From Parasitella parasitica NRRL 2501 (Eukaryota > Fungi > Mucoromycota), in the NCBI GenBank assembly GCA_025201805.1, contig MU619395.1:5002-59703 (forward strand): a stretch of DNA of 54,702 bases. Reading direction: 5' to 3'. Both the position numbers and the translations under genes were made by a program. Below, piece by piece: positions 42,422 through 45,280 of this stretch. Positions within the stretch are counted from its first letter, which is position 1, and every line of letters begins with the position of its first letter. The notes beneath the pieces are model-generated. The model made no database searches. It saw only the letters and a list, made by a program, of their open reading frames with translations, and had not been told where the DNA came from.

Positions 42422-42743
42422 GAAATCGTAGATTATTGTTGTTTAATAGAAGGAAGAAGAAGAAAGGAAGATTGTTATTTGTGTTAATTTTTAAAAAACC
42501 TATTTAGAGGCATGCATCAAGGATGTTTATGCAAGACATTGAATGCTCTTTGCAATATTATATTCGCTAATGATCAGGAATGATACATTATATCATTGTA
42601 TACACTTCGGAATAATTGCAGCATTTCACTTTTCAAACCCTCTTACATTGTACATTTTCAGGTATTTTGTACTTTTTATTTTTTTGATACTGTATGGTAT
42701 AACAGCATTGAAAAGCTCAATTAAACCAAATATAGTATATAAA

Positions 42744-43598
42744 TCAAGAGCGAATAGGTGTTTCCAAGTTATAAATTGCGGCGCCTTTGCTGTAATCTTT
42801 TCCTTCTCACGTTCATAAGAAGGAGGGAGTAGTTTACGCTTTTCTTCATAATAGTCATTTCGGAAATCACCTTCGCTGGCTGCATTGTATGTCAAATAGA
42901 CAGCCTGTCTGGCTTTTCAGTGTTGTTATCGCAAGATCGATGAGCAAGATATGCGCCAAAGAGCAAAATAGAGCCCTAGTATATGTATAAAGTGTTTAAT
43001 TTTATTGCCAGCACTTGATATAAATCCAGTTTTATAGTCCATTTACAGGCTTACAATAAACAGACACCCATTCTTTTGCTGGGGAAAAGACGGCCATCGT
43101 AGTCATTCTTATGATATCCAAGAACGACTTCCAAGCACCCATTTGTCTCGGTGGTTGGATCAATTGTGAACACTTCAGCCATATCAGAAGACTTTCCAAA
43201 GCAAAATGCACCCGCATCTTGGTGAGGAGGAAAGCCTCCACCGCCTTTCAGCTTGTAATTCGCCTTTTTCTTGAACAAAACATAGCCTTCACCATGAAGT
43301 TCCCTGAGGACCTGAAATAGACGAGGGCTTTTGACATAAGTCAACATCCCATCATGATAGGGAGTAAAATTCTCGCTTCGACATAGCTGTTTTTCGCCAG
43401 TAACAGTATTTGGCTCATATTATTGCATCCATTTACCCTTTTCTTGAGGCCAATTCTGGAATTCGCCACAAAAGACTTCAAGAGTACTATACTCTTCAAG
43501 CGAGAAAAAGTCTTGTGTCAGCAAAAACCCATCGTTGTGATAGAACTCGATTAGCTCTTTGGTTTAGGCGTATAGCTTCTGGCTTTTAGCGATCTCAT
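42744..43598 (-). pseudogene. PhnY-like phytanoyl-CoA dioxygenase (PhyH) family Fe(II)/2OG dioxygenase, disrupted
   Basis: Reconstructed: FYHNDGFLL...GKWMQ*YE (TAA at 43420-43422)...CRSENFTPYH...LFKKKANYKLKGGGGFPPHQDA (HQD at 43216-43224)...NGCLEVV...KEWVSVYCKP|intron|GSILLFGAYLAHRS...RQAVYLTYNAASEGDFRNDYYEEKRK...GAAIYNLETPIRS*. Several frameshifts. Confidence 0.85.
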
Positions 43599-43859
43599 TG
43601 ACTGAATCTGCATTGCTTGTTCTGCTGTATGCGTTACCAGGAAGAAGCCGTCTGTTTATATATGCATCTACTGTCACGCTGAACTCAACTCTGGGAGATG
43701 CCTTCCTATTCCCACGTTTTAATCTCACGGGATTAGACAATTTGATTCAACCCATGGGTGCCCGTGGCGAACAAACTCATCTATAGAAGACGTACTTCAA
43801 GTGCAATACAAGCATTTATATCTTTTCTAGCTCTTTTGTTTCTCGCTATACGTTATAGT

Positions 43860-44093
43860 TGATCAAGCTTCTGCTATTAAATTGGAACAGAATATCTGAG
43901 TAAATTGGGCTTCTCATCCAAAGTGTCTGCATTGGTTGAATCGCATGTACCTGTCAAACGCTATCTCACGGGCAAATATCCCAAATACTACAAGACTCTT
44001 AGTGCTGCCTCCAAATTATCCCTTAAATATCAGGTAATCACAGACGAATTGTAGCCTTGAATTGACAGCAGCCAATTTATGCTTGTACTACTA

Positions 44094-44150
<57 letters not shown>

Positions 44151-44412
44151 TCAAATATTATTTATAGAGGGACACATCGCGGAGTGGTGGACCTCGAACA
44201 ACGAAAAAACTTGTACTACTACAATAGGGCGGTCCCTATTCTCGGACCAAGTGCACGCATTCGAGAATGATCCTTTGTTTAAGCTCAAAGTACAACTTCG
44301 GCAGTGGGAAGATGCAGCCAAGGTAGCCGATCTTAAAGTGCCTGTTCTGGAATCTTATCACACAATGGCTGTTCGCCAATTGTTAAGAGTTATAATATCA
44401 TTTTCACTATAA
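43860..44412 (+). pseudogene. PhnZ-like HD-domain di-iron oxygenase, lacking the N-terminal half and frameshifted
   Basis: 43881-44033 reads IGTEYLSKLGFSSKVSALVESHVPVKRYLTGKYPKYYKTLSAASKLSLKYQ. After intron 44034-44227: GGPYS (frameshift) DQVHAFENDPLFKLKVQLRQWEDAAKV. The HV..KRYL, LS.AS..SL..QGG and LR.W..AAK motifs are PhnZ-type. The LLHDIGH segment is missing. Confidence 0.82.
44095..44209 (-). mobile_element. 5'-truncated poly(A) retroposon (LINE/SINE 3' end)
   Basis: ~53-nt poly-T plus ~60 nt unique sequence, flanked by the 13-bp direct repeat CTTGTACTACTAC at 44082-44094 and 44210-44222. Confidence 0.88.
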
Positions 44413-45280
44413 AAAATTACAGACTTTATGTTCTTTGTGTGGTTTAATATACATAATTTCAAAAAATGATAGCAAACATCTCGTGCAGACTAGCATGTGG
44501 ACTCTAAATTAAATTTATATACATAGTTATCGTCTAAATGAAATAATGATACCCTATCATAAAGGAAAACGCTTATCGGAAAAAGTTTGAGATTTTATTT
44601 TATTGTACGATGCAGAGGTGCTCCAGAGTTTGGTACAGCTCAAAAATCATGCTTTGGTATCATGATGATTAAACATGCTGCTCAAGAGAAACCAACCTTC
44701 GCTCGACACATTTGAGTTGGATTTTATTCTCTCAATTATCTCAATCCAGAAATCCCAAAAGTTGATGTCCGTGGCAGGTTCCTGAAATCTCGATTGATAA
44801 AAAAAAAACAAGATAGGAAAGTAATTTGGGCAGAGTATTTACCTCCATGAAATTGGCTTGACGTATGAAGAGCAATTAATGTTTGGGGTTTCAGGTACGA
44901 CATAATCGAATTCGTTTTCGATCAAAAGAGGATGGTGCAGAATGATAAACCTGTCGGGTTGTTGTACGAATAGCCGAGAGCTGATTGCACTGTATTATGT
45001 GTTTATTCACTAAACAAATAGATAGGAGCTGTAAGACTTAATTGTTGTCTCACAACAGGTAGTTGATATTTGAGTTTGGAGAGTAAAAAACTGGCCACGC
45101 TATCAGAGATTGACTTTAGCTGCTCAGCTCATATTTCAATTATTAAAAGCGCAAATCGGGCCCTATCAAAAGCGCCAAATGGTGAGACTTTCACATTGAA
45201 GAAACAAAACCCCTCCTCCCTTCTTTAAAGCTTCTTTTACCTTCTTTACACCCCTTTTCCCACCTTATTAATCACAATCA

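Follow-up and report, generated by a model that had tools for sequence, protein, structure and literature searches.

The window, that is, the whole 54,702-nucleotide stretch of DNA analysed here, carries at positions 42744-44412 a PhnY*-like Fe(II)/2-oxoglutarate dioxygenase gene of the PhyH family and a PhnZ-like HD-domain oxygenase gene, both real and arranged head-to-head, the former on the minus strand and the latter on the plus strand. Both genes are almost certainly pseudogenes. The best explanation of the locus as a whole, which is considered likely, is that they are both unitary pseudogenes, left over from the decay of a divergent PhnY*/PhnZ-type cassette of which many Mucoromycota have intact copies. 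A preliminary description of this stretch had correctly recognised the strands of the two genes, their pointing apart (42744-43613 and 43881-44412) and the presence of an intron in each (GT-AG, at 42976-43046 and 44034-44227). The working two-gene module that it also proposed is contradicted by the stops, frameshifts and deletions found in both genes.

Judged from sequence similarity, with spliced or stop-interrupted models compared in separate pieces, the homology of both genes lies far above chance. The PhyH piece matches Pfam PF05721 with E=2e-5, the whole gene matches the intact Mucor protein with E=3e-86 and its top NCBIfam match is NF052437. When the intact Mucor proteins were used as tblastn queries, the PhyH gene was covered over its full length, in three frames. 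On the HD side, a piece of 51 residues matches the solved PhnZ with E=9e-10, and TIGR03276 was matched too. The family assignments made beforehand (PhyH/PhnY and HD/PhnZ) are right, and all the motifs quoted with them were found in their places. The open reading frame track does show the pair only as fragments, as had been noticed, because the genes are broken and not only because they contain introns. The features of the locus are collected in Table 1.

Table 1. Features of the decayed PhnY*/PhnZ-type locus, in window coordinates
Feature	Position	Strand	Remarks
PhnY*-like PhyH Fe(II)/2-oxoglutarate dioxygenase pseudogene	42744..43613	-	Orthologue of a 278-aa Mucor protein
PhyH exons	Exon 1, 43613-43047; exon 2, 42975-42744	-	
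PhyH start codon, out of frame	43603..43613 (ATG at 43613)	-	8 nt to the first aligned codon vs 9 or 6 in intact Mucor
Premature TAA stop at the L16 codon	43564..43566	-	
Premature TAA stop at the Y64 codon	43420..43422	-	TAG here in the Parasitella parasitica copy
Net ~38-bp frame-shifting deletion, near 43075	43072..43080	-	From DNA alignment to M. lusitanicus
PhyH intron, 71 nt, GT-AG	42976..43046	-	Same intron site in M. lusitanicus
53-nt GT-AG stretch skipped in the X7 contig	42985..43037	+	Nested in the unspliced PhyH intron; one contig, depth 30
1-bp deletion/frameshift near 42910	42905..42915	-	Just before the distal R-x-x-V-Y-L-T-Y-N segment
1-bp deletion/frameshift near 42803	42800..42808	-	Close to the C-terminus
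Intergenic/promoter remnant	43614..43772		TATA-like box near 43655-43665; boxes 43693-43704 and 43708-43720 also in M. lusitanicus
108-bp stretch	43773..43880		Replaces ~536 bp of M. lusitanicus (rest of promoter and 5' half of HD gene)
Surviving middle of the PhnZ-like HD gene	43881..44033	+	Equals PhnZ residues 83-133; H104, K108, S126 and Q133 retained
HD intron, GT-AG, long T run	44034..44227	+	M. lusitanicus lacks it; position common to Phycomyces, Lichtheimia and Umbelopsis
Last HD exon	44228..44412	+	1-bp deletion near 44244; E in place of iron ligand D161 at 44308-44310

The dioxygenase gene lacks a complete frame: the letters of the HxD...H triad survive, with two stops upstream of them and frameshifts between them. 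Of 101 PhyH residues that do not vary among 21 intact orthologues, 15 are altered in the window copy; for the orthologues themselves the figure is 0-8, mostly 0-3. The HD gene is missing its start codon and approximately the first 107 of its 219 codons. Its YxxE loop and residues H34, H58, D59 and H80 are deleted and, with D161 replaced by E, H104 is the only iron ligand left. Neither the PhnZ-type di-iron motif (H..HD..H..H..D), nor the YxxE loop, nor a complete frame is present in this copy.

Could the pair nevertheless be functional in this organism, the breaks being errors of assembly or sequencing? Such errors do occur. In one assembly of M. lusitanicus (GCA_040256725.1, L004:6778-8901), 1-bp slips in short runs affect both genes and truncate the public models; these slips are probably long-read errors, intact proteins being found in another assembly of the species. 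The lesions of the window are of another kind, comprising in-frame stops, a deletion of about 38 bp, the loss of half a gene and changes at many invariant residues. Moreover, an independent run from another study (X7) provided a contig spanning 42734-44085 with zero differing letters, gap-free except for one 53-nt skip, this comparison taking in the HD gene as far as its surviving middle. Five further runs contain all sampled words and are possible sources of the assembly itself. The flanking genes, compared with those of M. lusitanicus, have no stops in their coding frames, and the P. parasitica copy of the pair is decayed as well. On account of the X7 agreement, the intact neighbours and the decayed P. 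parasitica copy, assembly error was rejected as the source of the breaks, and a functional pair in this organism is extremely improbable. The genome yielded no second copy of either gene, its sole other PhyH-like match being an unrelated family member, and a search for other phosphonate genes in it found no PhnA and no PEP mutase.

Decay has also affected the region between the two genes, for which the preliminary description had given a length of about 260 bp. The distance from the PhyH ATG to the first surviving HD codon is indeed 268 bp, as opposed to 888 bp in M. lusitanicus (some 620 bp longer), while the ATG-to-ATG gap in intact fungal relatives amounts to 458-773 bp. Because the interval runs to an internal HD codon and is what deletions have left over, it does not represent a promoter length. 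A local alignment joins positions 43717-43772 with the intergenic region of M. lusitanicus, and none of 500 shuffles equalled it. In the adjoining 43773-43880 stretch, HD exon 1 has left a faint trace at best, equalled by 19 of 500 shuffles. The two short boxes within 43693-43720 stand in swapped order relative to the M. lusitanicus promoter, and one of them contains a CACGTT site. From the conserved arrangement alone, we infer a putative promoter shared by the pair. Control of the pair by a Pho4-type factor is not supported, the enrichment of Pho4-like CACGTG/CACGTT sites between the genes being not significant (4 in 3973 bp vs a background of 0.48 per kb, p=0.12), and none of these sites was found between the genes in Phycomyces, Umbelopsis and Entomortierella. 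Single Pho4-like sites occur upstream of the PHO84-like genes of the window genome, but near other transporters too.

The contig from run X7 raises the question of transcription over the dead locus. If this run is RNA, as it probably is, the 53-nt skip would mark a transcript that runs antisense to the PhyH remnant and is spliced. It could be proposed that the locus was thereby recruited as a regulatory non-coding RNA, in keeping with the plus-strand GT-AG borders of the skip, with a depth of 30 over 42734-44085 vs 4 for the contig of the neighbour gene, and with the longest ORFs in the spliced plus-strand form having just 69 and 75 codons. Yet the observation comes from one contig of one run whose RNA nature is guessed, and contig depth is unfit to rank genes; in addition, the genome holds no second gene copy to be regulated and the stretch with the antisense intron is deleted in P. 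parasitica. Stray transcription from the leftover bidirectional promoter accounts for the antisense contig and would be its simplest reading; a regulatory role is very unlikely.

As regards the timing of the loss, two proteins encoded in the window are closest to those of P. parasitica (97.8% and 86%), a facultative fusion parasite of other zygomycetes (PMC4241652). The syntenic locus in the sequenced genome of this species consists of FAD1, the pair and an H2C2-domain gene, with about 80% DNA identity to the window. Both genes of the pair are pseudogenes there as well, with lesions mostly different from those of the window, a disturbed start region being common to the two copies. The dN/dS ratio between the two dead copies is 0.40, compared with 0.08-0.18 for three neighbour genes, and it differs both from 0.12 (p=4e-11) and from 1 (p=1e-6). 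Such intermediate value suggests that selection persisted for part of the time since the split and, therefore, that the loss was largely parallel. The pathway was probably lost in the window lineage mostly after its split from the sequenced P. parasitica strain. A shared first inactivating hit before the split is possible in view of the TAA and TAG stops that occupy the same codon; against one shared inactivation are the dN/dS well below 1 and the fact that most lesions differ. Between the HD remnant and FAD1, the spacer (44421-45206) has no DNA match to its P. parasitica counterpart, the spacer on the other side of the pair being well conserved.

The head-to-head pair was found at nine other loci, in M. 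lusitanicus, Phycomyces, Lichtheimia, Umbelopsis (two loci), Bifiguratus, Entomortierella, Penicillium riverlandense and Acytostelium. Linkage was also indicated by adjacent gene tags in M. circinelloides (HMPREF1544_05435/05436), M. ambiguus, M. bainieri, M. velutinosus and Apophysomyces. The genes flanking the pair vary between families while the pair itself stays; the synteny with FAD1 that the preliminary description had singled out for checking holds in Mucor and Parasitella, but not in the other loci read. Linkage in relatives, on which the proposed module had been made to depend, was thus seen at the nine divergent loci, with two departures from it: of the two PhyH copies in Backusella, one lacks an HD neighbour, and in Basidiobolus the genes lie tail-to-tail. 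The cluster of Basidiobolus meristosporus (L011:1-5807) contains, besides the HD and PhyH genes in that orientation, two PAP2 phosphatases and a second PhyH copy. Among the homologue matches listed, no proteins of Rhizopus proper, Choanephora or Blakeslea were seen, which is not proof of their absence. Some orthologues are already named 2-aminoethylphosphonate dioxygenase in databases.

Several of these loci have features of their own. In P. riverlandense (L113:15-5947), a Zn2Cys6 factor, PhnA, the HD gene and the divergent PhyH gene make up a fungal phosphonate cluster; the phosphonoacetate hydrolase PhnA, which comes after the pair, scores 582 bits (cut-off 407.55), and the gene model merges HD and PhnA into one product of 625 aa. 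In the public model of Bifiguratus adelaidae (L003:8001-10745), cwf18 and the PhyH gene are joined into one, and the HD gene lies concealed within a false intron. The dictyostelid Acytostelium subglobosum (L013:3279-5822) carries the same head-to-head pair, intronless, and homologues of both genes were seen in Synstelium and of the dioxygenase in Heterostelium.

What the cassette does can be approached through its intact copies. In the known systems, an Fe/2OG enzyme hydroxylates the carbon next to the phosphorus and a mixed-valent di-iron HD enzyme cleaves the C-P bond (PMC10574752, PMC8177086). The glutamate of the YxxE loop binds the substrate amino group (PMC8177086). The intact PhyH orthologues present the PhyH fold, the HxD...H triad and the distal Arg, and their best NCBIfam match is the methylphosphonate hydroxylase NF052437, with 186.9 bits (cut-off 500) vs 52 for ectoine hydroxylase. 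Against the PDB, the intact Mucor HD protein matched only PhnZ (E=5e-40) and TmpB (E=1e-26); with TIGR03276 it reached 170.7 bits, missing the cut-off of 214.6, in two stretches split by an insertion. The H..HD..H..H..D motif and the YxxE loop are kept in M. lusitanicus and in nearly all other Mucoromycota models. As all iron ligands and the YxxE loop are retained in the intact copies, oxidative C-P cleavage is likely. Furthermore, a PhnZ-like gene lies nearby in 76 of the 80 closest bacterial loci found (a set heavy in Poribacteria), one of them in a phnC-phnE operon, and the PhnA gene that follows the Penicillium pair points the same way.

On these comparisons, phosphonate catabolism is the likely role of the intact orthologues. 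In the proposed mechanism, the PhyH enzyme, with Fe(II), 2-oxoglutarate and O2, would place a hydroxyl group on the carbon adjacent to the phosphorus of a small phosphonate, and the HD di-iron oxygenase would then cleave the C-P bond with O2, yielding phosphate and a carboxylic acid. The best guess for the substrate would be an aminoalkylphosphonate such as 2-aminoethylphosphonate, giving glycine; for 2-aminoethylphosphonate itself the chances seem about even.

The substrate site bears on this choice. The residues that form it in PhnZ are presumably H62, K108, S126, T129, Q133 and R158, with H62 taken to be a substrate contact. Of these (4MLM numbering), intact HD proteins keep K108, S126, Q133 and R158, while H62 is Q and T129 is S. 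Of the HD proteins examined, those of dictyostelids all have Q for H62, as do the majority of the fungal ones; this change, common to Mucoromycota, Zoopagomycota, dictyostelids and one ascomycete, may mark a new specificity. Under such an interpretation, the pair would be dead in the window all the same, and the intact fungal pair would act on methyl- or hydroxyethylphosphonate, or on a non-phosphonate. This would agree with the closest curated model being the methylphosphonate hydroxylase of Gimesia and with both intact proteins scoring under the family cut-offs (187/500 and 171/214.6). The comparison is one-sided, however, since NCBIfam showed no model for 2-aminoethylphosphonate dioxygenase. 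The YxxE loop, with its glutamate for the substrate amino group, is intact, and PhoF, the one assayed fungal enzyme, acts on aminophosphonates. A different substrate is accordingly possible and rather less probable than an aminophosphonate, and the two readings overlap if that substrate is still a phosphonate.

Among the systems with which the cassette can be compared, PhnY*/PhnZ of the marine bacterium HF130_AEPn_1 (PDB 4MLM/4N6W) converts 2-aminoethylphosphonate to glycine and phosphate. There too, a PhyH-family Fe/2OG enzyme gene adjoins an HD di-iron enzyme gene, and the intact Mucor HD protein shares with that PhnZ the residues Y24, E27, H34, H58, D59, H80, H104, K108, S126, Q133, R158 and D161. 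Unlike the HF130 operon, the fungal genes are divergent and intron-containing; their HD proteins differ from PhnZ in the two substitutions mentioned above and in an insertion of 25-40 residues after the HD motif, and the window copy is dead. GmPhnY*/GmPhnZ1 of Gimesia maris (methylphosphonate; NF052437 and NF052439) supply the best model for the dioxygenase (187 bits) and the second best for the HD protein (141 bits), but the intact fungal proteins remain far under the respective cut-offs of 500 and 300. With respect to TmpA/TmpB of Leisingera caerulea (PDB 6NPA), TmpB was the next-best PDB match of the HD protein, weaker than PhnZ, and TmpA was not among the PDB matches of the dioxygenase.

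Two fungal precedents are closer. PhoF of Fonsecaea multimorphosa is a PhnY-PhnZ fusion assayed on 2-aminoethyl- and 3-aminopropylphosphonate (PMC10574752). It is fungal and has the same two domain types, in a single fused chain, whereas the two genes of the window are separate and lie on opposite strands. Penicillium psychrofluorescens and P. antarcticum have adjacent phnY*/phnZ genes, as annotated by KEGG orthology (PMC12422055). These pairs are, like the present one, unfused, adjacent and fungal, and that of P. riverlandense is head-to-head; unlike the Mucoromycota loci, the pair of this ascomycete is linked to PhnA and a Zn2Cys6 factor. Oxidative phosphonate breakdown of the PhnY-PhnZ type is thus already known in fungi from PhoF and the Penicillium pairs, and the pathway of the window is not new. 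The literature searched, most subscription journals excepted, contained no paper on a Mucoromycota or dictyostelid pair and no assay of a Mucoromycota enzyme.

For the window genome, the locus is a gene loss of little significance; its value lies with related fungi. A linked PhnY*/PhnZ-like pair, for the most part under a "hypothetical" annotation, is present in many Mucoromycota, among them M. circinelloides and M. lusitanicus, which are amenable to genetics. Whether early-diverging soil fungi and dictyostelids use phosphonates can be tested directly in this way, with the window organism as a natural null.

Concerning evolutionary origin, the dioxygenase tree unites fungi and dictyostelids in one clade (support 98, quick search) with no resolved sister, the planctomycete and Poribacteria homologues forming a branch separate from the fungal clade. 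The first trees placed the dictyostelids among zygomycete fungi; fungal monophyly without them was not rejected (AU p=0.74), and for this reason no claim is made of a cassette transfer from fungi to dictyostelids. No specific bacterial donor was found in the trees. Since fungal monophyly is not rejected and no bacterial sister was resolved, neither a fungus-amoeba transfer nor a bacterial origin is shown, and the ancient bacterial origin suggested for the pair in the preliminary description finds no support. A wider scenario, regarded as improbable, would have an old eukaryotic PhnY*/PhnZ branch (Mucoromycota, Mortierellomycota, Penicillium and dictyostelids, mostly with the H62-to-Q change) with a substrate range other than the bacterial one, lost twice in parallel in Parasitella lineages as dependence on fungal hosts arose. 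Full-length homologues of the dioxygenase were also seen in Tupanvirus and bdelloid rotifers (P0232, P0241 and P0261), and environmental sequences include many HD-PhyH fusions, in both domain orders.
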